A program made the position numbers and the translations under genes. Shown here in pieces: positions 6,817 through 59,675 of a DNA stretch of 64,000 nucleotides; within the stretch, counting starts at the first letter, position 1, and each line of letters opens with the position of its first letter. The stretch lies in IMG/VR virus record IMGVR_UViG_3300022868_000009, positions 124,001 through 188,000 of that record, one strand, 5' to 3'. The notes under the pieces were generated by a model. It was not told the origin of the DNA. It made no database searches and saw only the letters and a list, made by a program, of their open reading frames with translations.

Positions 6817-8418
6817 TTAAAAGTTTAATGAATATTTTATATTACCACTGTTATATATTCTATAAATACCTCTTTCTAACATTATTTCGTGTTCACTTTT
6901 ATTAGGATCATAACCTTCTCTAACTAAAACATCTTTTCTAAAATTATACCTATATAATCGTTTTAAATTTTTACCATCAAAATAATGATAATTCGGTTTT
7001 GTGTTATGAACGAATTTAAATTCCAATTTTTCATATAGATTTCCTTTACTCCAGCTTCTATCAGCATAAGTAATTATTTCACCCGGATTATAATTTCTGA
7101 TAAAATATTTAAATAATTTTGATGCACCACCAACAACATTAATATTTAATTTGTTACAAAACCTTAACAATTCATACTCTCCTTCTATACTTTTAGACCC
7201 CATTAATTTTCTTTTTTTACCAAAGGTCATTAGAGATACTAATTCATCTTCATAATAAAGACCTATTTTAACAAAAGAACCAACAAAACCTTGAAGATGA
7301 TTATCATTTAAAAAATTTCTAATCAATTTATTATCTATTATCTCTTTAATTATAGTTTTTCTAGCATATATTTTATCAGACTTTCCAATCATATTTAATA
7401 TTCTAGACTTGACAATTTCTTTTTGGTTAAACCATTCATCTTCCCAAATATGTATTAATTGAACACCTTTTTTTAAACAATTGTTTGTTTTATTTAAATG
7501 ATAATCCTTATCCTTATAAAGTTCTGAATGCCAATACAAACCATTAAATTCAAAAGCTAGATTTAAATCTGGTAAATAAATATCTAATTCTTTTCCATCC
7601 AAGATCTCTTTATCACTTGTTATTATTTCATAATTATAGTTTTCTTTAATAAAATTCACGATTTCTAATTCTTTACCTGAAATCTTATAATCTAATGTAT
7701 TACAAACTGTGCATAATATTGTTTTTTGTATTTTATATCTTTGATATAAATTTTTGCTATTAATATTAAAATAATGATCTTTACCACAATCACATTTAAC
7801 ATCTATCGTTCGATCAGTATTTAAAATATAATCTGTTATATTATATTCCGATAATTTAAATAATATATCTTTTTCCCACCTTTTATATGTTAACAAATAA
7901 TATGATTCTGTTTGTGTATACCATTCTTTTCCATATTTTTCAAGATTAGTTTTCTTTATTTTCTCTCTAATTTCATATGAAGAAAGTATCTCTTCCACGC
8001 CATATTTTTCAAGATTTGTTTTTTTAATTTTTTCTTTGACATCTTTATCTAATAATGTACAAGTAACGCCATATTTCTTGAGGTTTGTTTGTTTTGTTTT
8101 ATCTTTTATTTCTTTTATGTGTTGTGGATTTTCAACGCCATATTTTTCTAACATTGTATTTTTTCTTTTAATAGAAGAACATTTTTTACAACTATAAAAA
8201 CCTTGTCTTTTTTTATTTTCTAAATATTTATGATATCTTAGTTGTTTTTCATCTGAACATATCTCACAAACAGCAATTACTTTAACATGTGAATTTTGTG
8301 GCAAATCATTAACATCAATGTCCAATGTTTCACCATTATTACAAACATAATTTTTAGATCTATAATATGTTACATTACGATATGTTATATTAACATCAAT
8401 TCTACTATTTTTAATCAT
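6817..8418 (-). CDS. Putative homing endonuclease (KYG repeats plus Vsr-like domain)
   Basis: TNLEKYG repeats, ELDIYLPDLNLAFEFNGLYWHSE, IHIWEDEW; paralog of 57954..59675. Confidence 0.75.
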   Translation of the reverse strand: MIKNSRIDVNITYRNVTYYRSKNYVCNNGETLDIDVNDLPQNSHVKVIAVCEICSDEKQLRYHKYLENKKRQGFYSCKKCSSIKRKNTMLEKYGVENPQHIKEIKDKTKQTNLKKYGVTCTLLDKDVKEKIKKTNLEKYGVEEILSSYEIREKIKKTNLEKYGKEWYTQTESYYLLTYKRWEKDILFKLSEYNITDYILNTDRTIDVKCDCGKDHYFNINSKNLYQRYKIQKTILCTVCNTLDYKISGKELEIVNFIKENYNYEIITSDKEILDGKELDIYLPDLNLAFEFNGLYWHSELYKDKDYHLNKTNNCLKKGVQLIHIWEDEWFNQKEIVKSRILNMIGKSDKIYARKTIIKEIIDNKLIRNFLNDNHLQGFVGSFVKIGLYYEDELVSLMTFGKKRKLMGSKSIEGEYELLRFCNKLNINVVGGASKLFKYFIRNYNPGEIITYADRSWSKGNLYEKLEFKFVHNTKPNYHYFDGKNLKRLYRYNFRKDVLVREGYDPNKSEHEIMLERGIYRIYNSGNIKYSLNF

Positions 8419-8522
8419 TTTACAAAAGTCCCATTTTTACCATTGCTTATTATATATTAAAAAACACAAGTGAAAAATAAATTTATATATATAATAATGA
8501 ATAAAAATCATTTAGTTTAAAA

Positions 8523-10668: not shown

Positions 10669-11655
10669 ATGAAAAAAGAAATATCTGATTATATTATATG
10701 TAAAGTATGTGGTGAAAAAGTAAGAAGAATTTATGGTGCACATTTAAAGAAACATGGATTAACAAGCAAAGAATATAAAGAAATGTTTCCAGATGAACCA
10801 TTAACAACAAAAAATGATAATTTAAAAACAAGTAAAAATTCAGGATTGCATATGAAACAAGAAAAATATAAGAAAATGTTTTCTGAAAAAATAAAAGGAG
10901 AAAAAAATCCAAATCATAAAACAAAAACTACTGAAAAAGACAGGAAATCAAGAAGTCCATTTTCAAAAGATTTTAAAAAATATAAAAATGAACAAGAATT
11001 AATAGAATTTAGAGAAGAAGCATTAAAAGATAGAAAACACACAACTAGATTAGATTATTATTTAAAACAAGGGCTTGATATGGAAACATCCAAAAAAATG
11101 TTGAAAAAAAGACAAACAACATTTACTTTAGATATTTGTGTAGAAAAATATGGCAAAGAAAAAGGTATAGTAATTTGGAAAAATAGACAAGTAAAATGGC
11201 AAGAAAATTTATTATCTAATGGTAATTTAAAATGTGGATATTCTAAAATAAGTCAAGAACTGTTCTATGGTATATTAGAATATTATGATTATGAAAATAA
11301 AAAAGATATTTATTTTGCTACAAAAAATCAAGAATTTTTCATATCCAAAAAAGGAACAGACACAGATCCACGAATTTTTTTACAATACGATTTTTGTGAC
11401 ATGAAATCAAAAAAGATAATAGAATATAACGGTGATAGATATCATGCAAATCCGAAGATATATGAATCAAAAGACAATCCACATCCATTTAGAAAAAATA
11501 TAACATCACAAGAAATTTGGAATAAAGATAAAGAGAAAACAAGGATAGCGCAACAGGAAGGTTTTGATGTTTTAACTATATGGGATAGTGATTATAAAAA
11601 AGAAAAAGAAAAAATTATTCAGAAATGTCTGAATTTTTTAAATTTAAAAATATGA
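10669..11655 (+). CDS. Free-standing endonuclease between split-intein halves
   Basis: CKVC..HLKKHG zinc finger; YDFCD..IIEYNGDRYHANP..LTIWDS; paralog of 4617..5789. Confidence 0.8.
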   Translation: MKKEISDYIICKVCGEKVRRIYGAHLKKHGLTSKEYKEMFPDEPLTTKNDNLKTSKNSGLHMKQEKYKKMFSEKIKGEKNPNHKTKTTEKDRKSRSPFSKDFKKYKNEQELIEFREEALKDRKHTTRLDYYLKQGLDMETSKKMLKKRQTTFTLDICVEKYGKEKGIVIWKNRQVKWQENLLSNGNLKCGYSKISQELFYGILEYYDYENKKDIYFATKNQEFFISKKGTDTDPRIFLQYDFCDMKSKKIIEYNGDRYHANPKIYESKDNPHPFRKNITSQEIWNKDKEKTRIAQQEGFDVLTIWDSDYKKEKEKIIQKCLNFLNLKI

Positions 11656-13952
11656 AAGTAACAATTAAACATATTATTATATTTCTCATTCAATTAATTG
11701 AATATTATGAATTTAGAAATATTGATAAAGATGAAAATAAACCAAATAAAAAGATAGTAGATATTATACCAATAAATAAATATGTAAAAACTGACTATGG
11801 TAATACACCTGTTTCTGAAATAGTTAGAACAATACCATTACAGAGATATGAATTATTATTAGAAAATGATGATAAAATTGAATGCGCAGACACACATATA
11901 ATATATTGTAAAAATCATACTCCAAAATTAGTTTTAGATTTAACCGAAAATGATGAAGTTATTACAATATCTGGACTATCAAAAATCAAACATTTTAAAA
12001 AACTAAGAGGAAAATTATCAATGTTTGATTTAACTATTGATGGACCAGAACCAAGTTATTACACAAATAATATATTATCACATAATACAGTATCAGCTGC
12101 AATTGTTATTCTTCATTTTGTATTATTTAATAATGATAAAGGTTGTATGGTTGTTGCAAATAAAGGAACTACAGTTATAGAAATTATTGATAAAATAAAA
12201 TCTATTTATAAACATTTACCATTCTTCTTAAAAAGAGGTGTAATTAACTGGAATCAAAAATCTATAACATTTGATAATGGTTGTAGAATAAAATCAGAAA
12301 ATAGAACTAAAGAACCTGCTATTGGTTTTACAATCGACCTTTTGTATTTTGATGAGTTTGCAAAAGTACCATCTAACATAATTAGACCCTATTATGGATC
12401 CGCTGTTCCAACAGTATCATCAATCAAAAATTCAAAAATTATAATAACATCTACCCCAGATGGTTATAATTTATTCTACGAATTATTAACTGGTGCAGAA
12501 AAAGCCGAAGGAGATAAAGATAAGAACACATATGAATCCATGAGAGTATATTGGTGGCAAGTTAAAGGTAGAAGAGATACTAAACTTTATTTTAATAAAA
12601 AAATGTTATCTAAATATGGTGTTAAGGAAAGAGAAATTCTTCAAGAACTAGAATTATATGGATACACAATAACAAAAAGAAAAGAGGGTGAAAAATTAGT
12701 TCATATCATAGCATTTGATGAAGATAACGAAAAAACACACTTAGAAAAAATAAGATCAATAAGATTATTTGATAAATTACCTTTGGTTGAAATATGTAAT
12801 GTTACTAATTGGCAAGAAGAAGAAACTAAATTAGTTGGTGGTGAATCAATCTTCAAACAAGAATATGATATTCAATTTATAACAGGTGATAAGTTATTAT
12901 TTGATAGTATAACATTAGAAAGAATACAGAATGCTACAGAAAAATTTGAACATATTCCAATTCCTAATTTTGATAAAAGATTAGCCTTACCTTATGATAA
13001 ATTAGAATTTATTAAAGATAGACCAGATTTATTTGAGATAGAAGAAGTTAAAAAATATCATATGATGTTTTCTATTGATTTAGCTGAAGGTTTAGGTAGT
13101 GATTACACAGTTTTAAATATATTTAGATTATTACCAAAAGACAAAGTTATAATAGAAAAGAACAAACAGAAATTTACAAACATTTATGACTATTTCAAAC
13201 TAGAACAAGTTGGATTTTTTCATTGTAATTACTATTCAGTTAAAGAATTTGCACATTTATTGTATATGATTGCATATGAAATGTTTGATCCTGAAAAATG
13301 TAAAATATCTTTAGAATATAATACTTATGGTGGAGAATTATTAGCACATTTACCAAATGTATTTGAAGGTGATAATGATTATTTTGATGCCACATTTATT
13401 AGAACAAAACACAACCAAAATGATAAATATAGAAAAAAAGGTTTAAAAATAACAAAAGGCAATAAAGTTAAACTTGTTATAAAAGATTATCAAGATGCTA
13501 TTAAAAAACATAGTATAATAGTACATAATGCATTAAATATACTTGAAATGAAAGTTTTTAGTAAAAGAGAAACACCTTCTGGTGATTTTACATACCAATC
13601 AGAAACAGGAAATGATGATACCGTAATGTCATTAGTTAATTTAAGTGCTAGTTTAACATCAGTCCAATTCAAAGATATTGTTGATGATTATATTGCAACA
13701 GTACTAAATGATGAAGATAGAAGAATGATTGAAACAAATGTATCAGAATTTAGTGATGAAACTGTAGATTATAGTTCAGCTATATCAAGTTACAAAAAAG
13801 TATATCTAGATAAATCTAAAAAACCTGGAGTTGGAAATAGTTTTAAATCAAGTCCGTTCGAACAACCAAATCCTTACCAAAAAAAAGGAAATCCATTTGA
13901 AAATAATCCATTTGGTAAAGGTACAACTGGTGTTAGTCCTTTCGGAAAATAA
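11625..13952 (+). CDS. Terminase large subunit C-terminal fragment fused to long C-intein (probable start 11652; intein ends 12086)
   Basis: CADTH block B, YYTNNILSHN/TVSAA; Walker B LLYFDEFA, ITSTPDG, nuclease DLAEGLGSD and NDD. Confidence 0.9.
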   Translation: MSEFFKFKNMKVTIKHIIIFLIQLIEYYEFRNIDKDENKPNKKIVDIIPINKYVKTDYGNTPVSEIVRTIPLQRYELLLENDDKIECADTHIIYCKNHTPKLVLDLTENDEVITISGLSKIKHFKKLRGKLSMFDLTIDGPEPSYYTNNILSHNTVSAAIVILHFVLFNNDKGCMVVANKGTTVIEIIDKIKSIYKHLPFFLKRGVINWNQKSITFDNGCRIKSENRTKEPAIGFTIDLLYFDEFAKVPSNIIRPYYGSAVPTVSSIKNSKIIITSTPDGYNLFYELLTGAEKAEGDKDKNTYESMRVYWWQVKGRRDTKLYFNKKMLSKYGVKEREILQELELYGYTITKRKEGEKLVHIIAFDEDNEKTHLEKIRSIRLFDKLPLVEICNVTNWQEEETKLVGGESIFKQEYDIQFITGDKLLFDSITLERIQNATEKFEHIPIPNFDKRLALPYDKLEFIKDRPDLFEIEEVKKYHMMFSIDLAEGLGSDYTVLNIFRLLPKDKVIIEKNKQKFTNIYDYFKLEQVGFFHCNYYSVKEFAHLLYMIAYEMFDPEKCKISLEYNTYGGELLAHLPNVFEGDNDYFDATFIRTKHNQNDKYRKKGLKITKGNKVKLVIKDYQDAIKKHSIIVHNALNILEMKVFSKRETPSGDFTYQSETGNDDTVMSLVNLSASLTSVQFKDIVDDYIATVLNDEDRRMIETNVSEFSDETVDYSSAISSYKKVYLDKSKKPGVGNSFKSSPFEQPNPYQKKGNPFENNPFGKGTTGVSPFGK

Positions 13953-14000
13953 ACTTTTCAATTTTTCGGAAATATATGTTTAAAATATAGAATTTTATAA

Positions 14001-14789
14001 ATGGCTAAAAGGATTGTAACAAAAAACAATGTTTTTAAAATGAATGTTAATGAACAATTACCACTCTTTTTAAAAATGATTCAAGATTTAACTCAAATAG
14101 ATGATAGAATCTTATTTAAATTTAATAATGATAAATTATTAATATATAGCATGGTTGGTCAAGATACTAATATACATGCATTTAAATCACATATTATAGA
14201 TATGTGTGAAATATTTTCACTTGTTAAAAATGAATTTGAAACAGATATTAAATATACTGTAAAAAATGCCAAGAAATTTTTCAAAAGTATCCAAGGGTTA
14301 ATAAATTACAAAGAAGATATTGATTTAAAATTAGTTTATAATGAAGATAATTTTGGAGAAAAATTAATGATTAAAAATAGTATTTATAAAAGAGAATTTG
14401 CTGGAGATGATCCAACAGTTTTCAAAAAAGATATTAATATTGAAGCCATTAATGATGCCATGGATACAGATTTATCATCATTTTCTTTTAAATTAACAAA
14501 AGATAAATATGACCATATTAAAAAGGAATCTGGAATTGATACAGAAAATGAAATTTATTTCTTAAATGTTCGTGACGGTGCCGTTTCATTAGGAGAAAAT
14601 TCATGGGAATTAAAGGTGGATGAAGGAGTAGAAACAATAGATAGTACAATAAGTTTTCCTAAAAAATACTTTAATAGTATTAATTTTGATAAAGATATAG
14701 ATGAATTAACTATATGGGTTTTTGATATGTTTATATTAGTAATAGGAGAAAACACAAATTTAATGATATCAATAGAATTAACAATTTAA
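14001..14789 (+). CDS. Probable sliding clamp (gp45/PCNA-like)
   Basis: 262 aa, acidic, alternating beta/alpha pattern, T4-like context; no diagnostic motif recognised. Confidence 0.45.
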   Translation: MAKRIVTKNNVFKMNVNEQLPLFLKMIQDLTQIDDRILFKFNNDKLLIYSMVGQDTNIHAFKSHIIDMCEIFSLVKNEFETDIKYTVKNAKKFFKSIQGLINYKEDIDLKLVYNEDNFGEKLMIKNSIYKREFAGDDPTVFKKDINIEAINDAMDTDLSSFSFKLTKDKYDHIKKESGIDTENEIYFLNVRDGAVSLGENSWELKVDEGVETIDSTISFPKKYFNSINFDKDIDELTIWVFDMFILVIGENTNLMISIELTI

Positions 14790-14885
14790 AGTAAAAATTA
14801 ATAATAAATTTTAATCTTTTAGAAAAATTCCATATATTTGTATTAGTTAAAATTAATATATAAATAAAAATAAAAAATAGAAATT

Positions 14886-15233
14886 ATGACGTAGAACAAA
14901 AAACTTTATGTAATTACAAGAAATGACTTACCATCCGGTACAAAAGCCGTTCAGGCAGGTCACAGTTTAGCTCAGTTCATCCTCGAACACTTAGAAATAT
15001 CACAACTGTGGCACAAAGAATCCCAGTATTTAATTTATTTATCAATAATTGATGAAAATGCTTTATTGCGTTTAATTGAAAAATGCAATAAATGTAATCT
15101 TAATATATCCGTATTTAAAGAACCAGATATAAATAATGAGATAACATCTATTACAATTGAGCCAGGAAAAAAATCTAAGCGATTAGTTGGTCATTTACCA
15201 TTATTATTTAAAAAAGAAAGGATAACAGTATGA
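14886..15233 (+). CDS. Pth2-family peptidyl-tRNA hydrolase-like protein with in-frame TAG at codon 3 (absent from ORF track)
   Basis: MT*NKKLYVITRNDLPSGTKAVQAGHSLAQF...FKEPDINNEITSITIEP...HLPLL; TGA overlaps the next ATG. Confidence 0.75.
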
Positions 15234-15646
15234 AAACATTAGAAAAAGAAGAATACACAGCAATATTTAATGGATATGAAACATTATTATTTAAATTAGG
15301 AAAGTTAACAAGTATCTTACATGAAACAGATCCTGAAAATTATGTAGAAATGACAAATATATCAGATATTGATTATTATACTAGAAAAAATGATATTAGA
15401 TACATAGAATTGACTGGAGAAGAATATCATGTTGGTTGTGGTGATTATGAAAATGATTATTGTGAGTTTCCTGAAGAATGGATCTGGACAGACCAAGATG
15501 ATGTGGTGAAAATTGTAATAGAAAAAAGAATTGAAAGAGAAGAATTGAAAAAAAGGGAAAAAGAATCACACGAAGAAAAGAAACAAATAGAATTAGAAAA
15601 CAAAGAACTAGAATTATTAAAAAAATTAAAAACAAAATATGAATAA
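15230..15646 (+). CDS. Hypothetical protein
   Basis: ATGA-coupled to the Pth2-like ORF. Confidence 0.65.
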   Translation: MKTLEKEEYTAIFNGYETLLFKLGKLTSILHETDPENYVEMTNISDIDYYTRKNDIRYIELTGEEYHVGCGDYENDYCEFPEEWIWTDQDDVVKIVIEKRIEREELKKREKESHEEKKQIELENKELELLKKLKTKYE

Positions 15647-16010
15647 CTTTAAAAATAAATATGAACGATTACAATTCAACCTTGAAAACCAAGGCTGGGG
15701 TAAAATGAAATGTTTTGGGAACTCAATGTTACCAAAATTAGATAACCCAACAATGAATACATATATTCCACAAGATGATTATGAAGTTGGTGATATAGTA
15801 TTCTGTAAAGTAAAAGGGAAATTTATAGATTCTCATTTAATTACACAGATAAATGATAAAAAAGGCTATATGATTAGTAATAACAAAGGACATCAAAATG
15901 GATGGAGTAAACGAATTTTTGGTCGTGTAGTTAGAGCCGTTAATGAAAGTAAAGATGAGAAATGGTTTAATTTCACAGAAGAAAAATTAAATAACATAAC
16001 TAAAAAATAA
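15639..16010 (+). CDS. S24/S26 peptidase-like protein
   Basis: GNSMLPKL, GDIVFCKV, SHLI (Ser/His arrangement of S26-type peptidases). Confidence 0.6.
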   Translation: MNNFKNKYERLQFNLENQGWGKMKCFGNSMLPKLDNPTMNTYIPQDDYEVGDIVFCKVKGKFIDSHLITQINDKKGYMISNNKGHQNGWSKRIFGRVVRAVNESKDEKWFNFTEEKLNNITKK

Positions 16011-16051
16011 AAGGAGATAATATGAAATAGATTATTAGAGGACCCACGTAA
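16011..16051 (+). other. SD-led minigene MK*IIRGPT* with TAG at codon 3
   Basis: AAGGAG (16011-16016) ataat ATG AAA TAG ATT ATT AGA GGA CCC ACG TAA. Confidence 0.55.
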
Positions 16052-16103
16052 GTTGTTGTCAACACAAAAATTTAGTAAAACTAACAAAAATTAATTAATA
16101 ACA

Positions 16104-16598
16104 ATGTTTAAAAAAATAAAAAATATTATGAAAACAGAAACAATGACAACAACAGAAATTAACAAAGATTCACATCATGCAACAGATTTACAAACTAGAT
16201 TTGAAGTATTATTAGAAGAAATTAAAGATTTTCTTAATAAAACACATATTGAAAAAAATGATAAACCAATAATTAACACAGTTTATCAATTTACAGGTGA
16301 TCTTTCAAAATTAAAACCAAAAGTACAACACTTAAATAATGCAGGTATTTGTAGAAGAAGAGTTTTGAAAAGAATGTTAAGAAAAGTTGAACATAAAATG
16401 TCTTTAATAAACATTAATAGATTATTTCACTTTATTGAAGTTTATATTATAGAAAAGAAATCTACTGTAAAAGTAACTTGTGAAAAAGATAGAAAAATTC
16501 AAATGTTAAGAAAAGAATGGAAAAAATTACAATCTAAATCAGATTTAGCTTTAAAAGAGTATAAAGAAGAAAAAGGTGATTTCTACAAACAAATATAA
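16104..16598 (+). CDS. Hypothetical basic protein
   Basis: ORF ending KEEKGDFYK. Confidence 0.65.
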   Translation: MFKKIKNIMKTETMTTTEINKDSHHATDLQTRFEVLLEEIKDFLNKTHIEKNDKPIINTVYQFTGDLSKLKPKVQHLNNAGICRRRVLKRMLRKVEHKMSLININRLFHFIEVYIIEKKSTVKVTCEKDRKIQMLRKEWKKLQSKSDLALKEYKEEKGDFYKQI

Positions 16599-16628
16599 AC
16601 AAAAATAGTGCTGTTTTCAGCACTAATT

Positions 16629-16700
16629 GGTCCCGTAGCTCAGTGGAAGAGCAGAAGCTTCTAACCCTTTGTGTCGCTGGTTCAAATCCAGCCGGGACCG
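16629..16700 (+). tRNA. tRNA with CUA anticodon in canonical register (putative amber suppressor; Arg-TCT only if read out of register)
   Basis: GGTCCCG/CGGGACC, GCTC/GAGC, A26, GAAGC-TTCTAAC-CCTTT, GTGTC, GCTGG-TTCAAAT-CCAGC, G73. Confidence 0.75.
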
Positions 16701-17003
16701 CTATAACCTCATTATATTGGTTGTTCTATTATACTTAATAGTTTCTTTTTGTCTATTTACCCAATTAATTAATTCAGACTTAATTTCTTTATATCTTTCT
16801 TCTGTCATTTTATCATCATAAAACTCACCTTGTTCAATTTGATGATCATCAGATAACCAAAAATCGGAAACTAACTCATTTAATGTCTCCTCTAATTGTC
16901 TAAAATTAGTTTCAACACCATTCAAATAATATTTCTTTTGATTTACAGCCCATTCTTCATCTTCTTGAGTTACATTTTCATTATATTTCTTTAAATGTCT
17001 CAT
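16701..17003 (-). CDS. Putative capsid-internal protein
   Basis: MRHLKKYNE N-terminus. Confidence 0.6.
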   Translation of the reverse strand: MRHLKKYNENVTQEDEEWAVNQKKYYLNGVETNFRQLEETLNELVSDFWLSDDHQIEQGEFYDDKMTEERYKEIKSELINWVNRQKETIKYNRTTNIMRL

Positions 17004-17305
17004 TAAAAAGTATTTTTTATTACTCTACCAAATGGTTCTTTTTTATCAGTTGAATTGTACCAATTAAATAGATCACTCATATATTGAATAGTAAATTGAT
17101 TGATCAAATCAGCCCACTTTATACCTATATCAAATCCTTTTAAAAAACCATATTTCTTTTTAAGTTCTTGTAATTCAAAAAAAATATCATCAAAATCCAT
17201 ATTATCAGATAACATTTTAGAGATTATATCTAATTTTTCTTCTACTTTTTTCTCACTCTTTTCATCAAGATCAAAATTTTCTTTAAATGTTTTTAAATGT
17301 TTCAT
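17003..17305 (-). CDS. Putative capsid-internal protein
   Basis: MKHLKTFKE N-terminus. Confidence 0.6.
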   Translation of the reverse strand: MKHLKTFKENFDLDEKSEKKVEEKLDIISKMLSDNMDFDDIFFELQELKKKYGFLKGFDIGIKWADLINQFTIQYMSDLFNWYNSTDKKEPFGRVIKNTF

Positions 17306-17320
17306 TATTTTTCATTATTT

Positions 17321-17560
17321 TTATAGAGTTGTACCTATTAACAATCCGCTTAGAAATATTAATATATTAGTAAGACCTAGATTATTATTATTTGTATCAA
17401 ATATAGATCGACTTTTACTATAAATAGTTATTCTACCGTCATGTCCTTGAGTCGCACCAATCGTTAAATCATAACCTCTATCATTTAACACTTTAAGTAT
17501 TAATGATATCTTTGGTTTGTCACCGTTACCATTCTCATTATATTTCTTAAGATGATTCAT
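17321..17560 (-). CDS. Putative capsid-internal protein
   Basis: MNHLKKYNE N-terminus. Confidence 0.55.
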   Translation of the reverse strand: MNHLKKYNENGNGDKPKISLILKVLNDRGYDLTIGATQGHDGRITIYSKSRSIFDTNNNNLGLTNILIFLSGLLIGTTL

Positions 17561-17561
17561 A

Positions 17562-18002
17562 TTAAATAACTTTTAACCAGTAATGTCCATTTTTAGTTGT
17601 AAGTTCACTATCAGGATATCTTTTTTGGATATTTTTAATATCAATATCTGAAACTTCTTCAAGCTCACCTAAGTCTAGTAAATCTTTGGTAGATTTAACT
17701 TTAAGTTTAGAATACTCGTTATCGATCTTTAAAACGTATTCAGTATCCTCTTCGTTTTTCTCATTCACTTTTTTTTTAAAAAGATCTTTGCCATATTGAG
17801 TTGTACCATTTCCCTTAGACCAACCCTTTTCGATGTCTTTGTAAAACTTCTTAGCTTTGGCTTTGTCCTTACCAAAAGATCTAGGACTTTTTACGCCATA
17901 AAGGTCAAGTAAATTAGAGAAAAATTCTCTATATTCTTTTTGAAGAGGAGATTCTTTTCTCTTTTCGTTTAAGAATGATTCATATTGTTTTAAATGTTTC
18001 AT
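17562..18002 (-). CDS. Putative capsid-internal protein
   Basis: MKHLKQYESFLNE N-terminus. Confidence 0.6.
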   Translation of the reverse strand: MKHLKQYESFLNEKRKESPLQKEYREFFSNLLDLYGVKSPRSFGKDKAKAKKFYKDIEKGWSKGNGTTQYGKDLFKKKVNEKNEEDTEYVLKIDNEYSKLKVKSTKDLLDLGELEEVSDIDIKNIQKRYPDSELTTKNGHYWLKVI

Positions 18003-18021
18003 TTCAATATATTAGTTTTTA

Positions 18022-18354
18022 TTATTCTACTGTTAAATAATCAATTAATTCATCAAATAATTCTGCTTTATCTGGAAATAGTCCTTTATATAGATCACTA
18101 TCGGGAACATCAAATGAATATTCTCCACCCTCATCATTTATAATGATTGGGTCATAATCATCATCTTCTAAAGTATACTTAATTACACCATCACTTTTAT
18201 TAATATCACCAACTGTAAAATGAGTTAATTCTTCTAATTCATTAGAGAATTGTAATTCTTGTGGTGTTAAAGAATCACCCCTGTCTTGTAACATATCATT
18301 AGAATAGTCAGATAATCCAGGATGAAAATCTTCAAAAGTTTTTAAAAACCTCAT
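18022..18354 (-). CDS. Putative capsid-internal acidic protein
   Basis: MRFLKTFEDF N-terminus. Confidence 0.6.
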   Translation of the reverse strand: MRFLKTFEDFHPGLSDYSNDMLQDRGDSLTPQELQFSNELEELTHFTVGDINKSDGVIKYTLEDDDYDPIIINDEGGEYSFDVPDSDLYKGLFPDKAELFDELIDYLTVE

Positions 18355-25210: not shown

Positions 25211-25840
25211 CTATGAAATAGGTCCATTTTGATTTTGTGATTGATCTGTAGGGAAATTATATTGATTTTTTTCAGGTATAAAAGTATCATTTGGAGTTAC
25301 ATCATCTATTTTTTCTTCTGTTTTTATTTCCCAATCTTTTTCTAAATGAAATTCTGATTCATCAACATAAATTAAATCATCTAATAATTCATCTGATTTA
25401 ATACTCATATCTTCTTCTAAGTTAACAACTTTTTCAATTTTATCAAAATTATCAAAATTTTCAAAACCACATTTAAATGCAATATATTCACAGTAATTTA
25501 TATTTCTATTTAATTGATCGGCTATATATTCACTATAATCAACTGTTTTATTTAATTGTTCATCTATTTTATCTTTTTCAAGAATATTAGAAACATCATT
25601 TTTATATCCATGATCTTCTAACTCGACCCATTTTTCTAACGGAGAATCTTCTATAGAATTTAGTATTTCAATTCTTGATTCAAATTCTGTAGGTAAATAA
25701 TAATTATAAATCGTAGTAGTACCTTTTTGTTGTGTTTTTGGCACAAAATTGATATAATTATTTATTATAATATCAATTTCAGATTTACTTCTTCCTTGTC
25801 CAACTTGTATATAATGTACTAGAATTAATTCTTTCTTCAT
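25211..25840 (-). CDS. Hypothetical acidic protein
   Basis: Contains YSEYIAD/YCEYIA repeat. Confidence 0.6.
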   Translation of the reverse strand: MKKELILVHYIQVGQGRSKSEIDIIINNYINFVPKTQQKGTTTIYNYYLPTEFESRIEILNSIEDSPLEKWVELEDHGYKNDVSNILEKDKIDEQLNKTVDYSEYIADQLNRNINYCEYIAFKCGFENFDNFDKIEKVVNLEEDMSIKSDELLDDLIYVDESEFHLEKDWEIKTEEKIDDVTPNDTFIPEKNQYNFPTDQSQNQNGPIS

Positions 25841-27410: not shown

Positions 27411-29567
27411 ATGGAAGAAAATACAGAAAATACAAATCAACCAAAATACCCTTGGTTAGCAAAATTTGCAATAAATTTAAATGATTATGCATCTAAAGGT
27501 AAATTAAAACCAGTAATAGGTAGAGACGAAGAAATTCGTAGAATATTACAAATACTTTCCAGAAAAACTAAAAATAATCCAATAGTTATAGGTGAATCAG
27601 GTGTTGGAAAAACATCTGTTGTTGAAGCATTAGCCCAAAGAATAGTTGATGGTGATGTACCTGAAAATCTTAAAGATAAAGTAATAGCATCTTTAGATTT
27701 AGCTACATTAGTTGCTGGTGCAAAATATAAAGGTGAATTCGAAGAAAGAATACAAACCATTGTAAAAGAAATAATTGAATCTAATGGTCAAATTATACTT
27801 TTTATTGATGAAATTCACACATTAGTTGGTACAGGTGGTGGAAATGGTGCAATGGATGCTGCAGGTATTTTAAAACCTATATTATCAAGAGGTGAAATTA
27901 GAGCAATTGGTGCAACAACTATTGATGAATATAAAAAATCAATTGAGCAAGATAGAGCATTAGATAGAAGATTTCAAACAGTTATGATTGATGAGCCTGA
28001 TAAATTTCAATCAATTTCAATTTTAAGAGGTATTAAAGATAGTTTTGAAAAACATCATGATGTTAGAATAGTAGATAGTGCTATTATAAGTGCTGTAGAA
28101 TTATCAATAAGATATGTATCTGATAGATTTTTACCAGATAAGGCTATTGATTTATTAGATGAAGCTTGTTCTAAATTAAGATTAGAAATAAATTCTGTAC
28201 CAGGTGAAATTGATGAAATATCTAGAAGAATTCAACAATTAGAAATTGAAAGAGAAGGTTTAAGAATGGAAGGAAACAATAAAAAAGTTTCAAAAATTAC
28301 ATCTGAAATAGATTCATTAACTGAAAGCTTAAAAACTTTTAATTTACAATGGAACAAAGAAATAGAACTTGTTGATAATATTAAAATATTAAAAAAAGAT
28401 TTAGCTGGATATAATAATGATATCGAAAAATTTAGAAATGAAGCATATTACGAACATGTAGCAAAATTACAATATGGTATAATACCAAAAGTAGAACTAG
28501 AAATAAAAGAACTAGAAGATAAACTTAAAGAAATACAAAAAGGTGTCCAACTTGTTGATGAAGAAGTTGATGGTGAAGATATAGCAGAAATTGTAGCAAA
28601 ATGGACTGGTATACCAGTTTCAAAAATGTTAAAATCTGAAAAAATAAAATTAGTAAATCTTGAAGATGAATTACATAAAAGAATTATTGGCCAAAATGAA
28701 GCTGTAACAGAATTATCAAACGCAGTAAGAAGAAGTAGATCCGGATTACAAGATACAAAAAAACCAATTGGTTCTTTTATTTTCTTAGGAACCACCGGAG
28801 TTGGTAAAACAGAAACAGCAAAAGCACTAGCTGAATATTTGTTTGATGATGAAAATGCAATGGTAAGAATTGATATGAGTGAATATATGGAAAGACATGC
28901 CGTAGCTAAATTAATCGGTCCCCCTCCAGGTTATATTGGTTATGAAGAAGGTGGTCAATTAACAGACCAGGTAAGAAGAAAACCTTATTCAGTAATTTTA
29001 TTTGATGAAATTGAAAAAGCTCACCCTGATACATTTAATACCTTATTACAAGTATTAGATGATGGTAGATTAACTGATAATAAAGGTAGAACTGTTGATT
29101 TTAAGAACACTATTATTATTATGACTTCTAATATTGGTTCTCATATTATTAGAGAAAATTTTGAAAAATTAACTGATGAAAATAGAGAAGAAGTTATTAA
29201 AAAAACCAATGATGAAGTAATGGAAGTTTTAAAAAATACTGTAAGACCAGAATTTTTAAATAGAATTGATGAAATTGTGACATTTCAACCATTAACAAGA
29301 GAAGAAATTAAAAAAATTGTAGTATTACAATTTAACTCAATCAAGAAAAGATTACCAGACGTTGAATTAGAATTAACAGAAAAAGCTCTTGATTATTTAA
29401 CATTAAAATCATATGATCCTCAATTTGGAGCTAGACCAGTTAAGAGAACATTACAAGATACAATTTTAGATGATTTATCAATGTCAATTTTAAAAGATGA
29501 AGTTAAAAAAGATGATGCTATTTTAATTGACTATGATGGTGAGAAAATAACATTTGACAATAAATAG
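27411..29567 (+). CDS. clpB: ClpB disaggregase lacking the N-terminal domain
   Basis: Two AAA+ modules (GESGVGKT, IDEIH; GTTGVGKT, FDEIEKAH), coiled-coil M domain, PPGYIGYEEGG. Confidence 0.92.
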   Translation: MEENTENTNQPKYPWLAKFAINLNDYASKGKLKPVIGRDEEIRRILQILSRKTKNNPIVIGESGVGKTSVVEALAQRIVDGDVPENLKDKVIASLDLATLVAGAKYKGEFEERIQTIVKEIIESNGQIILFIDEIHTLVGTGGGNGAMDAAGILKPILSRGEIRAIGATTIDEYKKSIEQDRALDRRFQTVMIDEPDKFQSISILRGIKDSFEKHHDVRIVDSAIISAVELSIRYVSDRFLPDKAIDLLDEACSKLRLEINSVPGEIDEISRRIQQLEIEREGLRMEGNNKKVSKITSEIDSLTESLKTFNLQWNKEIELVDNIKILKKDLAGYNNDIEKFRNEAYYEHVAKLQYGIIPKVELEIKELEDKLKEIQKGVQLVDEEVDGEDIAEIVAKWTGIPVSKMLKSEKIKLVNLEDELHKRIIGQNEAVTELSNAVRRSRSGLQDTKKPIGSFIFLGTTGVGKTETAKALAEYLFDDENAMVRIDMSEYMERHAVAKLIGPPPGYIGYEEGGQLTDQVRRKPYSVILFDEIEKAHPDTFNTLLQVLDDGRLTDNKGRTVDFKNTIIIMTSNIGSHIIRENFEKLTDENREEVIKKTNDEVMEVLKNTVRPEFLNRIDEIVTFQPLTREEIKKIVVLQFNSIKKRLPDVELELTEKALDYLTLKSYDPQFGARPVKRTLQDTILDDLSMSILKDEVKKDDAILIDYDGEKITFDNK

Positions 29568-29602
29568 TAGTTTATATATTTGTAGAGAAATTAATTTTTT
29601 GG

Positions 29603-34183: not shown

Positions 34184-34663
34184 ATGAGATACAAATCATT
34201 AACATATAAAGGTGAAACCTATACAGAACAATACAAAATAGACGATATATTAATATCAGAAAATTTTAGTTGGATTTTAGATGCTGAAATTGAAAATGCA
34301 GACATTGAAATATCTAAAGAAACATTAATTTGGAACAATGGATTATGGTATAATGGTGCTTGGACTTATGGTGTTTTTAGAAATGGTGAATGGAGATATG
34401 GTGTTTGGAAAGGTGGTGTTTGGTATAACGGCACATGGAAAAATGGAAGATTTGAATCTGGTATAATTTTTGGTGGTAAATTTATAAATGGTATTATATT
34501 AGGACAAGAAATAAGGGGTGGTGAATTTATAAATGTTGATATTTCTGACCAAGTAAAACGAAGTGATATTGGTGATTCCAATAATGATAATATACCTGCT
34601 CAAGGTGAGTCAATTTTAGAAAATGTCCTAAGTTTTAAACTATTTATTAATCTTAAAAATTAG
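34184..34663 (+). CDS. GxWxx pentapeptide-repeat protein
   Basis: WNNGLWYNGAWTYGVFRNGEWRYGVWKGGVWYNGTWKNGRF. Confidence 0.7.
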   Translation: MRYKSLTYKGETYTEQYKIDDILISENFSWILDAEIENADIEISKETLIWNNGLWYNGAWTYGVFRNGEWRYGVWKGGVWYNGTWKNGRFESGIIFGGKFINGIILGQEIRGGEFINVDISDQVKRSDIGDSNNDNIPAQGESILENVLSFKLFINLKN

Positions 34664-55002: not shown

Positions 55003-55884
55003 CTATCCTTTAATGAAATTATTAAAAGTTTTTAAAAATTTACTTTCCAATTTAATTGGGAATTTTACTGGTTCTTGTAAAGTTGTTTGAGTAGTTTTAA
55101 ATCTATTTAAACTATTACTTGTTACTAAATGTGTAAATAAACTCAATGTACTATTATTAATAGATTGAATAGCTAAATCAAATAATTCATCATTAGTATT
55201 TCTAAGAATTCTATCAAAAACCATTTGAATATCATTAGCATAATAAATATTTTCTTGTTCATCATCATAAAAATGAACTGTATTATATTGATCTTGTTTC
55301 AAAGGAATAAATTTTTCATTATCAATTTTCATACCAATTAAATGTTCTAATAATATTTCAGTTTTCTTTAAACTAGTGAGACTTGAATGTCTTGATTCTA
55401 ATCTATCACCAACAAAATATATTTTAAATATACTAAGATCTATATCTTTTAAATATTTTCTTAAATCATTTAAAAGTTTTTGATAATGTTCTCTGTTATT
55501 TCTACCAGTTAATATTGCTATATCTACATTTTCATTGTCTTGTAAATGTCTAATATTATTAACTAAAAATTTAATAGGAGTTTCATTTAATCTTTCTTCA
55601 TCAAAAGTTTCAACAAATGAAACACCAAGATTTTCAATGGAAATAGTTCTTTTCTTTAGAATTTTATCAAAAAGTTTTCTACTTATATAATAATCATCAT
55701 TATTATAACTTATACACAAATTATCATTTTTATATAGACCATTCTGAATCATAAACATATCATGTTTAGATAATTTAATAATTGGTATATTTGGTTTTCT
55801 TTTATCAATTATCCAAATCTTATTATCTAAATACCATAGAGTATTATCAAGGTCAAAAAAATGTATTTCTCTGTTTTCCATCAA
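55003..55884 (-). CDS. HAD-superfamily protein
   Basis: FFDLDNTL, ILTGR, FYDD. Confidence 0.75.
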   Translation of the reverse strand: MMENREIHFFDLDNTLWYLDNKIWIIDKRKPNIPIIKLSKHDMFMIQNGLYKNDNLCISYNNDDYYISRKLFDKILKKRTISIENLGVSFVETFDEERLNETPIKFLVNNIRHLQDNENVDIAILTGRNNREHYQKLLNDLRKYLKDIDLSIFKIYFVGDRLESRHSSLTSLKKTEILLEHLIGMKIDNEKFIPLKQDQYNTVHFYDDEQENIYYANDIQMVFDRILRNTNDELFDLAIQSINNSTLSLFTHLVTSNSLNRFKTTQTTLQEPVKFPIKLESKFLKTFNNFIKG

Positions 55885-57953: not shown

Positions 57954-59675
57954 TTAATTCAAAAAACCATTTTTTAAAATACCCCACTCAAAACATATAT
58001 GACCAGAATTATTTATTCTGTAAATACCCCTTTCTAACATTATATCATGCTCTGTTCTATTTGCATCATAACCATCTTTAACCAATGTTTGTTTTCTATA
58101 ATTATATCTATGCCTTCTAACACCATCAACTATGTAATGATAACCTGGTTTTGTTGTGTGACTCCTATTAAAATTTAAATTATCATAAAGATTGCCTTTA
58201 CTCCAACTTCTATCAGCATAAGAAACTATTTTTTTCGGATCATAATTTTTAATAAAATATTTAAACAATTTACTAGCACCACCAACAATATTTGTGTTTA
58301 ATTTGTTGCAAAACCTTAATAACTCAAAATCATATTTTTTAATAACACCTATACCCAATCTATTCTTACCAAACGTCATTAAAGAAACTAATTCATTTTC
58401 ATAATATAATCCTAATTTAACACTAGATCCAACAAAACCTTGTATATGATTATTATCTAAAAATTCTCTTATTAGTTTATTATCGTTAATTTCCTTTATT
58501 TGTGTTTTTCTAGCATAAATTTTATTTGGTGTTTTACCTAATTTATTTAATATCATTGATTTAACTATATTTTGTTTATATTTCCAATCATCTTCATAAA
58601 TATGGATTAATTGAATATCCTTTTCTTCACATTTTTCTGTTTTATTTAAATGATATCTATCAGATTTATATAATTCATTATGCCAATATAAACCATTAAA
58701 TTCAAAAGCTAATTTTAAATCTGGTAAATAAATGTCTAATTCTAATGGCTTTATTATATTTCTTTTATTATTTAAAATTGTTTTGTCATAATTCGATTTA
58801 ATATAATTTAAGAAATCAATTTCAAGTCCAGAAACTGATTTTAAAATAGGATTGCATTTAGTACATAACAAAGTATTAGATCTTCGTCTACTATTCAAAA
58901 GAACATAACTTATTTCAAATTCGTGTCCTTTTTCACACATCATTAAATATTTTTTTTCTTCTAAATTTAAACTTATTACATCATAATCTTCATAATATTT
59001 TAAATATTTATTCATGATTGTTTTTCTTAAACTTTTAATCATTCTGTCTTTTAAATCAATATTATGTAATGGTACAATCACACCATATTTTTCTTTCATT
59101 GTTCTTTGTCTTTTAATTTTAACTAAATCCAATTTTGAAACATTATCAACTCCATATTTACTCAAACACGTTTCTTTATATCTATTATAAATTTCAACTG
59201 ATTTTAATGGACTACTGACATTATAATTATCCTTTAGTGTTTTTAAAGATTTTTTATGAATTTCTTCATTTTGAATAGGTGAATTATAACCATATTTTTT
59301 AATATTAGTTTTGATAATCTTTTCTTTTACTAAAATATTTTCTGATGGTGTTTTTGTACCAAATTTATCTAAACATGTTTGCATTCTTTTATTTTTAACA
59401 TGATTACTTTTATTCATGCATTTCTTAGAACAAAAAGTATAATATCCAATATTAGAATTCTTAAATTTGACAAAATTACCACATTCACATATTACAATAT
59501 TTTTAATATCATTATACCAATGATAAACTTGTTGCTTAAATGGTAAATCATCTAAACCATTTTCAATTACATATTTTTGTATTTCTTCTAGTATACTAGT
59601 AAAATACTTTTCGAGATAATTCTTTCTGAACATTTTACCAGATGAATCTAGATTTTCACTAAAAATACTTTTCAT
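57954..59675 (-). CDS. Putative homing endonuclease between sheath and tube
   Basis: KYG repeats, ELDIYLPDLKLAFEFNGLYWH; paralog of 6817..8418. Confidence 0.75.
   Translation of the reverse strand: MKSIFSENLDSSGKMFRKNYLEKYFTSILEEIQKYVIENGLDDLPFKQQVYHWYNDIKNIVICECGNFVKFKNSNIGYYTFCSKKCMNKSNHVKNKRMQTCLDKFGTKTPSENILVKEKIIKTNIKKYGYNSPIQNEEIHKKSLKTLKDNYNVSSPLKSVEIYNRYKETCLSKYGVDNVSKLDLVKIKRQRTMKEKYGVIVPLHNIDLKDRMIKSLRKTIMNKYLKYYEDYDVISLNLEEKKYLMMCEKGHEFEISYVLLNSRRRSNTLLCTKCNPILKSVSGLEIDFLNYIKSNYDKTILNNKRNIIKPLELDIYLPDLKLAFEFNGLYWHNELYKSDRYHLNKTEKCEEKDIQLIHIYEDDWKYKQNIVKSMILNKLGKTPNKIYARKTQIKEINDNKLIREFLDNNHIQGFVGSSVKLGLYYENELVSLMTFGKNRLGIGVIKKYDFELLRFCNKLNTNIVGGASKLFKYFIKNYDPKKIVSYADRSWSKGNLYDNLNFNRSHTTKPGYHYIVDGVRRHRYNYRKQTLVKDGYDANRTEHDIMLERGIYRINNSGHICFEWGILKNGFLN

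Follow-up and report, generated by a model that had tools for sequence, protein, structure and literature searches.

Does a TAG at the third codon of an otherwise intact phage gene mark a dead gene, a recoded genome or a deliberate control point? The question was raised by a stretch of 64,000 nucleotides (positions 124,001 to 188,000 of IMG/VR record IMGVR_UViG_3300022868_000009; hereafter the window), in which two nearby ORFs have TAG as codon 3 and are followed by a tRNA gene with a CUA anticodon. The initial annotation had proposed a self-contained readthrough switch, in which competition between the suppressor tRNA and RF1 would set the output of a peptidyl-tRNA hydrolase and of ATGA-coupled downstream genes. 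In-frame stops near the start are termed gates below.

Features of the locus

The features of the unit, in window coordinates, were as follows:
14833-14842 (+): TATATTTGTA box about 45 nt upstream of the gated ATG, a possible Bacteroidetes-type -7 promoter element (TAnnTTTG)
14854-14862: TAATATATA
14886-15233 (+): Pth2-like gene of 115 codons, with TAG as codon 3
14892-14894 (+): gate codon TAG, followed by A
15230-15646 (+): 138-aa ORF whose ATG overlaps the Pth2-like stop (ATGA), with no Pfam match; translational coupling is inferred only
15639-16010 (+): 123-aa ORF overlapping the previous ORF by 8 nt, with a weak, sub-threshold match to peptidase S24 (PF00717, E 0.011); a homologous start was seen in locus L148 (below)
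16022-16051 (+): 9-codon gated leader mini-ORF, M-K-[TAG]-I-I-R-G-P-T-stop (TAA)
16052-16061 (+): predicted anti-start arm GTTGTTGTCA, directly after the leader's stop codon
16143-16598 (+): partner gene of 151 aa, counted from the family-conserved ATG at 16143 (the ORF is open from 16104), with the other arm of the helix at 16144-16153
16606-16625: 8-bp hairpin between the partner gene and the tRNA
16629-16701 (+): tRNA with anticodon CUA (amber suppressor by sequence)

Every feature described in the initial annotation was present in the sequence. The first ORF read ATG (14886-14888), ACG, TAG (14892-14894) and AAC (14895), then 112 sense codons to TGA (15231-15233), and no ATG, GTG or TTG occurred for 58 codons after the TAG. 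The second ORF read ATG (16022), AAA, TAG (16028-16030) and ATT, behind AAGGAG. The pattern ATG-NNN-TAG-AT alone was close to chance (12 matches against 5.3 ± 2.5 expected), and the significance came from the comparison with other phages and not from the pattern. The TAG at 14892-14894 was identical in two assemblies from different samples.

The piece after the TAG matched Pfam PTH2 (PF01981) over profile positions 2-115 of 115 (E 1.3e-8; 35.5 bits against a cut-off of 23), and the domain therefore begins right after the stop. The AlphaFold2 model had pLDDT 96.5 and pTM 0.89, and its top 14 Foldseek PDB matches were all Pth2 structures (TM 0.59-0.78; crystal structures 0.70-0.78). The family profile matched PDB 2zv3 (E 1.7e-11). 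The catalytic residues of characterised Pth2 enzymes are a Lys in the GKGK loop and an Asp in the DAG motif; in the alignment to 2zv3 the GKGK loop was two residues shorter and the Lys position varied between K and Q, such that catalysis may differ, whereas acidic E76 and D78, plus Q20, H23 and T84, were invariant or nearly so.

The tRNA scored 60.9 bits in Rfam (also detected by ARAGORN), with CUA at positions 34-36 in a 7-nt loop with U33 and A37, a short variable arm, G73 and a C31.C39 mismatch. The alternative UCU (Arg) register was rejected, as it gave only 2-3 stem pairs. Similarity to 460 other phage tRNAs placed Lys, Arg and Asn nearest and did not resolve the amino acid identity. The only Rfam family found in 14000-18000 was the tRNA, and 13 related loci contained only tRNAs and tmRNAs, with no ribozyme or riboswitch. 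Only on the - strand was the hairpin at 16606-16625 followed by a T-run, and it is probably the terminator of the converging - strand genes and not of this unit. The decamer at 14833-14842 also occurred at a similar distance upstream of the gated Pth2-like gene of Tenacibaculum phage pT24; its promoter role is inferred from the general features of Bacteroidetes promoters. A search for a -33/-7 pattern was not significant and a sigma-70 scan was at chance level.

Stop codon usage in the phage

About 83 kb of this phage, leaving out about 265 kb of the 348-kb contig, contained no other interrupted gene, and the terminase and tail-sheath genes were uninterrupted. TAG ended 5 of 75 likely ORFs in the window (27411-29567, 34184-34663, 25211-25840, 55003-55881 and 16701-17003), once as TAG TAG. 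ORF coverage was 0.79 under the standard code and 0.80 with TAG as sense in the window, 0.83 under both in another 13 kb of the genome (L175), and 0.77 and 0.78 in locus L174. Lak-type loci carrying a Pth2-like domain, used as a positive control, increased from 0.33 to 0.85.

Conservation of the gate and covariation with the tRNA

A megablast of 9 kb against phage records gave one weak hit. Of the first three homologues (80%, 48% and 45% identity), two had TAG at the same place, and all related loci had a CUA tRNA. In 160 further loci, 90 distinct gated genes were found with the in-frame stop at codon 2-10 (mostly 3-5) and none elsewhere in the gene. The base after the stop was a purine in 89 of 90, against 60% purine at first codon positions of the same genes. 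Among long ORFs, no gated family other than Pth2-like stood out.

Of the 43 gated genes with at least 2.5 kb on both sides, 37 had a suppressor tRNA in the fetched locus, and all 117 suppressor tRNAs were on the gene's strand. The anticodon matched the gate in 66 of 66 homologues with a suppressor tRNA in the fetched locus: 63 TAG/CUA, 2 TAA/UUA (loci L054 and L097) and 1 TGA/UCA (locus L148), with both the TAA and TGA types nested inside the TAG-gated clade, although the TAA and TGA covariation rests on two independent lineages with a visible tRNA. The tRNA position, 30-130 nt after the partner gene, was occupied by a UUA tRNA in L054 and by a UCA tRNA in L148. In L054 the leader was also switched (gate TAA, terminal stop TAG). 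A sense codon in homologues with no CUA tRNA had been named beforehand as the outcome that would refute a switch, and it was not what was found.

Cultured carriers of the gate and tRNA included Acinetobacter phage ME3, Tenacibaculum phage pT24 and probably Bxz1-type mycobacteriophages (Mycobacterium smegmatis). The gene is called too short or from the wrong start in cultured phages, as in pT24 BPT24_235 and probably in Bxz1 gp154 and ME3 gp266.

Leader mini-ORF and partner gene

The partner family was found in 28 gated loci and in 0 of 30 ungated ones, with a conserved C-terminus EYKxEKG(D/N)FYK. The predicted structure of the partner was helical (pLDDT 74.7) with no PDB match, and no Pfam or PHROG family and no lead from the ESM Atlas were found.

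A gated leader was present upstream of the partner family in 27 of 28 loci, and in many other loci, with post-gate peptides ending in RxPP, RGPT, RAPT or KPP (IRIRYPP, IIRAPP, INIRGPP, VKPP and others); exact RAPP or RGPP occurred in several. In L148 the partner gene was present without a recognisable gated leader. Such mini-ORFs with a TAG gate numbered 70 on the gene strand against 5 on the opposite strand. A minimal RxPP is reported to be sufficient for ribosome arrest (PMC10951233), and RAPP and RGPP to give robust arrest (PMC12992588). The leader in the window ended in IIRGPT, with Thr in place of the last Pro, and at 9 residues was shorter than characterised arrest peptides.

The 10 bases after the leader's stop (16052-16061) were a perfect complement of 16144-16153, including UG of the partner AUG (-14.8 kcal/mol; 1% of random 25-nt windows of the sequence did as well). 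A duplex of about -9 kcal/mol or stronger, reached by 2% or fewer of random windows, was found in 18 of 27 loci, with compensatory changes. Nine of 27 partner-family leaders, and most leaders in front of other downstream families, had no simple anti-start duplex. RNAalifold on a MAFFT alignment of 12 leaders found no consensus helix; the arms are out of register in a sequence alignment, and per-locus duplex energies were evaluated against random windows instead.

Interpretation

The observation that prompted this analysis is real. The interpretation given to it in the initial annotation was partly supported: the conserved stop, its same-strand linkage to a suppressor tRNA, its covariation with the anticodon and the absence of general recoding in the regions examined agreed with a readthrough switch, whereas its reading of the second ORF as a drop-off minigene of the lambda bar type was not supported. 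RF1 competition, Pth activity and dependence of the ATGA-coupled genes on the gate remain inferences.

The best explanation, considered likely but not certain, is a phage translation switch built on a private suppressor tRNA. In this view, the CUA tRNA decodes two sentinel TAG codons, and full-length Pth2-fold protein would be made only when the suppressor beats release factor 1. Without suppression of the leader, the ribosome would stop at 16028-16030, too far upstream to touch the helix 16052-16061/16144-16153, which would hide the start codon of the partner gene. With suppression, it would run six more codons through I-I-R-G-P-T to the TAA at 16049, where it would probably dwell, because the peptide resembles RxPP/RAGP arrest motifs, and would then sit on the anti-start arm and free the partner AUG. 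Both outputs would therefore follow suppressor activity, as in a feed-forward AND gate. The anatomy, the conservation, the linkage and the two covariations (gate with anticodon, arm with start region) were established by the analysis, whereas expression and charging of the tRNA, its suppression of the stop, ribosome stalling on the leader, blocking of initiation by the helix and hydrolysis of peptidyl-tRNA by the Pth2-like protein are inferred from sequence and predicted structure. The purpose of that protein may be clean-up or tuning of suppression by-products, given the tmRNA and CCA-adding-enzyme genes that neighbour related modules.

Genome-wide reassignment of TAG (code 15), as in Lak or crAss-like phages, would make the two TAGs ordinary codons in a region poor in them. 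A protein collection holds this gene translated with Q at the TAG, Lak-type relatives with a Pth2-like domain are clearly recoded, and the roughly 83 kb without another interrupted gene leave out about 265 kb of the genome. Nevertheless, use of TAG as a stop and confinement of the gate to codon 2-10 in 90 homologues, with a fixed purine context, are not what scattered sense use predicts, and most gated loci had no recoding in their flanks; reassignment is considered unlikely. A lambda bar-like function, in which dropped-off peptidyl-tRNA would sequester host tRNAs and provide the linked hydrolase with substrate, is considered equally unlikely. Without suppression both ORFs are 2-codon ORFs next to a Pth-family gene, and bar minigenes are toxic when Pth is limiting, but the sequence after the stop was conserved as a peptide, the terminal stop was almost never the gate codon, the arm after the second stop co-varied with the downstream start, and the gate tracked the anticodon, none of which is needed for a drop-off minigene.

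Restart at the codon after a tiny upstream ORF, without any suppressor, is slightly less likely still. ATT followed the stop in 56 of 84 gated genes, and in Bxz1-type phages the annotated start is the GTG right after ATG TAG. However, the window has AAC after the stop and others have GTA, GGC or ACA, none of them start codons, and restart explains neither the covariation of stop and anticodon nor the tight linkage to a suppressor tRNA. In the mycobacteriophages the start-TAG-GTG lies 6-7 nt after a -10-like hexamer, which suggests a leaderless mRNA on which an internal GTG would have no ribosome-binding site, although this is inferred. A stop at codon 3 would normally mean a dead gene, but a pseudogene or an assembly error is for practical purposes refuted by the identical TAG in two assemblies and by conservation of the stop in homologues down to about 35-40% identity, with the rest of the ORF intact and a high-confidence predicted Pth2 fold.

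Comparison with related systems

In stop-codon-recoded phages (code 15 or code 4: Lak, crAss-like, Garnet and others; bioRxiv 10.1101/2021.08.26.457843; PMC9523058), a phage suppressor tRNA also lets ribosomes read in-frame stops in phage genes while the host uses the standard code, which has been proposed as a timing device. In those phages 26-71% of genes carry in-frame stops, whereas here about 83 kb contained only two sentinel codons, both within the first few codons of their ORFs and next to the tRNA, with TAG still used as a stop. The preprint mentions no Pth-family gene or leader. As with the RAPP/RGPP/RAGP arrest peptides ApdA, ApdP and SecM (PMC10951233, PMC12992588, PMC7897499), which unmask a downstream start site when a stalled ribosome opens a helix, a short upstream ORF ends in R-x-P-P-like residues and the mRNA just after it pairs with the next gene's start region. 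The window's version, however, reads RGPT. The leaders here are 8-12 codons, too short for a secretion signal, and would be entered only after readthrough; the proposed sensor is the gate codon, and the input would be suppressor activity and not protein export.

In prfB (release factor 2), an early in-frame UGA likewise senses termination capacity, but escape is by +1 frameshifting and RF2 is sensed, whereas here escape would be by a dedicated tRNA and the regulated product is not a release factor. Engineered UAG switches and suppressor-tRNA feed-forward loops (PMC6412442, PMC7969014) place a UAG right after the start codon of a target gene, or in a leader peptide controlling a downstream gene; both synthetic designs have a counterpart here, in what appears to be a natural, widespread version with its own conserved codon context. 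Lambda bar minigenes share two-codon ORFs whose peptidyl-tRNA products are Pth substrates, but here the conserved post-stop codons and downstream pairing point to readthrough as the functional event. The fold is that of archaeal and eukaryotic Pth2 (PF01981; PDB 2zv3, 3erj, 1q7s; TM 0.75-0.78), with conserved Q, H, D/E and T positions, in a phage subfamily of about 23% identity with a shortened GKGK loop and tied to suppressor tRNAs; its activity is predicted only. No paper linking Pth-family genes, gated leaders and phage suppressor tRNAs was found in the literature searched, which lacked most subscription journals.

Implications

The authors of the XacN1 jumbo-phage genome stated that they could not identify genes targeted by its two CUA tRNAs (PMC5852040), and the unit described here would provide a concrete target for such orphan suppressor tRNAs. 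It appears to be a natural counterpart of two engineered designs (PMC6412442), with about ninety evolved codon contexts and very short RxPP leaders that could be reused as parts. Its leaders would give arrest-type peptides a new input, the decoding state of a stop codon, and may show an intermediate step between standard-code and recoded phages. A broader reading is possible but tentative: standard-code phages may carry a self-contained regulon that senses suppression, in which a private suppressor tRNA would be read out by a direct gate and by a stop-gated RxPP arrest leader, and the outputs, a Pth2-fold hydrolase and a helical partner, would feed back on termination or ribosome rescue. This would be the long-missing target of the orphan suppressor tRNAs of jumbo phages, and a plausible evolutionary seed from which genome-wide stop-codon reassignment grew.

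Composition of the window

The window had a G+C content of 25.7% and formed part of a ~348-kb phage contig which was assembled twice from different samples. It carried a terminase large subunit (11625-13952) with about 150 N-terminal residues ahead of the Pfam match (residues 156-306), a tail sheath, homing endonucleases, and a separate array of seven tRNAs. Two paralogous HNH-type homing endonuclease genes were present on the - strand (6817-8433 and 57954-59669), and further copies occurred elsewhere in the same genome.

Between 14854 and 16701, the + strand contained, in order:
A/T-rich spacer
14886-14894 (+), ATG ACG TAG, followed by 112 sense codons ending in TGA at 15231-15233, the Pth2-like gene with its stop codon near the start (the gate)
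(+), 138-aa ORF starting in the ATGA overlap
(+), 123-aa ORF
16022-16051 (+), 9-codon ORF, ATG AAA TAG ATT ATT AGA GGA CCC ACG TAA
16104-16598 (+), ORF, open over this interval
16629-16701 (+), tRNA with anticodon CUA (Rfam 60.9 bits)

No ATG, GTG or TTG followed the first TAG for 58 codons, and the piece after the TAG covered the whole Pfam PTH2 profile. The arrangement described in the initial annotation, with TAG codons early in a Pth2-like gene and in a short ORF followed by a CUA tRNA, was therefore correct as stated. On the - strand, a run of five or six small paralogous ORFs (about 80-150 aa; 16701-18354) beginning M[KR]HLK... or MRFLK... converged on the tRNA, and the first of them ended in TAG exactly at the 3' end of the tRNA.

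Sequencing error, pseudogene and general recoding

Neither an error, nor a pseudogene, nor, over the roughly 83 kb of the genome that was examined, general recoding accounted for the interrupted gene. The TAG was identical in both assemblies. ORF coverage of the window barely changed when TAG was treated as sense (0.79 against 0.80), the difference being this gene, and the same held for another 13 kb and 6 kb of the same genome retrieved through a paralogous endonuclease. In contrast, coverage of Lak-type loci used as a positive control rose from 0.33 to 0.85. No other ORF in the window was interrupted by a TAG. TAG terminated 5 of 75 likely ORFs, once as TAG TAG; this tandem (29565-29570) ended the ClpB-like ATPase gene (27411-29567), and is a plausible safeguard against read-through in a phage carrying an amber suppressor. 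In clearly TAG-recoded, Lak-like phages (loci L063-L066 and L078-L080), the Pth2-like domain lay well inside a longer open reading frame, and the nearby suppressor tRNA had anticodon UUA, not CUA.

Conservation of the gate and linkage to suppressor tRNAs

The first search found relatives at 80% and 48% identity, whose DNA read ...ATG ACG TAG ATT... and ATG AGA GAA ACT TAG ATT. All five viral loci encoding a relative carried a CUA tRNA. In the 80%-identical relative (locus L006, 663-1136), a DUF4295 (PF14128) ORF, which the window lacked, ran in frame into ATG ACG TAG and the Pth2-like ORF, and read-through there could give a fusion protein.

Profile-guided scans then gave 80 viral and 80 metagenomic loci. 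After removal of duplicates, 90 distinct genes had ATG, 0-8 sense codons (mostly 1-3), an in-frame stop, and then the conserved first strand (KLxVhTRxDL). The stop was TAG in 86, TAA in 3 and TGA in 1. The base following the stop was A in 72 and G in 17, compared to 60% purine at first codon positions of the same genes. At least one suppressor tRNA was present in the retrieved DNA of 66 of the 90 genes, and in all 66 the anticodon matched the gate. Among genes with at least 2.5 kb on both sides, 37 of 43 had such a tRNA. All 117 suppressor tRNAs lay on the strand of the gene, often 50-140 nt upstream or within 2 kb downstream. One phage (locus L013) had two gated Pth2-like paralogues (MTH#V... 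and MTH#I...) and two CUA tRNAs.

The rare gates were informative. Loci L054 and L097 read ATG ACG TAA GTA and carried a UUA tRNA, and locus L148 read ATG AAA ACA AAA CAT TGA GTT and carried a UCA tRNA; on a maximum-likelihood tree both were nested among TAG-gated genes. The tRNAs themselves were very diverse, with 55 distinct sequences in the first 80 loci, and the link is therefore functional and not a single inherited block. The tRNA of the window (16629-16701) and the Bxz1 tRNA (locus L088, 4657-4729) shared the loop UUCUAAC and a C31.C39 mismatch. Across all loci, 41 of 113 distinct suppressor tRNAs had a non-Watson-Crick 31:39 pair, against 18 of 354 other tRNAs; a paper on 4-bp anticodon stems may be relevant (PMC13092985). 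A second, "ungated" branch of the family started with a plain ATG and was followed within a few bases by a CUA tRNA.

Predicted structure of the Pth2-like protein

An alignment-based AlphaFold2 model was very confident (pLDDT 96.5), and its 14 best PDB matches were all Pth2 structures (TM up to 0.78). The family profile found M. jannaschii Pth2 (E 1.7e-11). The family was large (3601 clusters at E <= 1e-3). Q20, D78 and T84 were invariant, and R9, D11, H23, E76 and P77 nearly so, whereas the glycine-lysine loop of canonical Pth2 was two residues shorter. The fold assignment is therefore firm, but does not extend to the activity.

The gated leader and the partner gene

The neighbors of 104 modules were clustered. 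The window ORF ending at 16598 belonged to a family present in 28 gated loci and in none of 30 ungated ones. This partner gene lay 0.4-0.8 kb downstream of the Pth2-like gene and had a conserved C-terminus, EYKxEKG(D/N)FYK; the family alignment placed its start at the ATG at 16143. About 60-215 nt upstream of that start, 27 of the 28 loci had a mini-ORF built like the one in the window, i.e., ATG, 1-4 codons, the gate stop, 4-8 codons, and then a different stop. The TGA-gated module of L148 (6200-6660) had the partner gene and a UCA tRNA but no recognizable gated leader, and its S24-like ORF looked truncated.

The post-gate peptides were related: IIRGPT (window and three others), IRIRYPP, IRIRHPP, ISIRAPT, RIRPP, VKPP and VNKPP. 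In L054 and L097 the leader read ATG ACG TAA GTA AAT AAA CCA CCG TAG; the gate had switched together with the tRNA and the terminal stop had become TAG. A pattern search over all modules found 70 such mini-ORFs with a TAG gate on the gene strand against 5 on the opposite strand; the corresponding counts were 10 and 7 for TAA, and 4 and 3 for TGA. The hits included exact RAPP and RGPP (IIRAPP, ILRAPP, ARAPP, INIRGPP). Mini-ORFs also occurred in the "ungated" branch, 340-480 nt upstream of the Pth2-like gene and in front of a ~106-aa gene that abutted it, and that branch is therefore probably under the same control through its leader.

RxPP motifs are known ribosome-arrest modules. A minimal RxPP is reported to be sufficient for arrest, and such motifs are depleted from bacterial proteomes (PMC10951233). 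RAPP and RGPP give robust arrest and sit upstream of regulated genes (PMC12992588).

Predicted pairing between the leader and the partner gene start

Folding of 16005-16165 paired GUUGUUGUCA (16052-16061, directly after the TAA of the leader) with UGACAACAAC (16144-16153, which includes UG of the AUG of the partner gene). For each of the 27 loci, the 25 nt starting at the stop codon of the leader were tested against the -10..+16 region of the downstream start. Eighteen loci gave duplexes of -9 to -15 kcal/mol, matched by 2% or fewer of random windows from the same locus. Nine partner-family loci, and most leaders in front of other gene families, showed no simple duplex. Sequences differed while the pairing was kept, as in the pair of the window and in the following pairs:
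GUGCUUCCAU / AUGGAAGCA
GUUUCCAUAA / UUAUGGAAAC
GUUCCAUUUUA / UAAAAUGGAAG

The geometry fits, based on general ribosome dimensions. A ribosome with the terminal stop in its A site would cover the arm, which begins 0-3 nt after the stop, whereas a ribosome released at the gate, 21 nt further upstream, would not.

Cultured carriers

Acinetobacter phage vB_AbaM_ME3 read ATG ACT TAG ATT in front of its Pth2-like ORF, about 0.4 kb after a CUA tRNA. Tenacibaculum phage pT24 read ATG AAA TAG ATA; its annotated CDS starts, in this reading, 134 nt too late, and an annotated tRNA-Sup (CUA) lay 2.5 kb upstream. More than 200 cluster C mycobacteriophages carried the gene followed by a CUA tRNA. In Bxz1/Cane17 and in ScoobyDoobyDoo/Phabba, the annotated GTG start was preceded by ATG TAG or GTG TAG, 6-7 nt after a -10-like hexamer, which by inference would be a gate at codon 2 of a leaderless mRNA. 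Public annotations of cultured phages started the Pth2-like gene after the gate in pT24 BPT24_235, ME3 gp266 and Bxz1 gp154 (loci L190 2424-2560, L191 2453-2500 and L088 3971-3979), and probably miss its true start.

Comparison with known systems

Four known systems are nearest to this module. Recoded phages use the same tRNA logic, but genome-wide. RAPP-type arrest leaders share the logic of leader and helix, but take a different input. The prfB gene also uses an early in-frame stop as a sensor, and engineered UAG switches (PMC6412442, PMC7969014) are the fourth such system. No description of this module was found in the literature, although most subscription journals fell outside the search and prior description cannot be excluded. 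One jumbo-phage paper states explicitly that the targets of its CUA tRNAs could not be found.

Proposed mechanism

The interpretation in the initial annotation was supported in part. Its idea of a switch is largely borne out by the test proposed with it, the conservation of the early stop and its linkage to a CUA tRNA, while the short ORF that it had taken for a minigene is reinterpreted as a stop-gated leader of the arrest type. The module is directly testable.

We propose that the tRNA licenses two outputs. One would be the Pth2-like enzyme, possibly together with the two overlapping ORFs behind it, and the other would be the partner gene, controlled through the leader. The parts, their conservation, and two independent kinds of covariation are established by the present analysis, whereas suppression itself, stalling at RGPT/RxPP, occlusion of the start by the helix, and the activity and substrate of the enzyme are inferred. 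Although these data do not explain why a hydrolase is tied to a suppressor tRNA, tmRNA genes lay 3-5 kb upstream of the gated module on the same strand in five loci (L021, L028, L099, L102 and L109), and a CCA-adding tRNA nucleotidyltransferase lay 1-2 kb downstream in twelve. Together these point to ribosome rescue and tRNA recycling.
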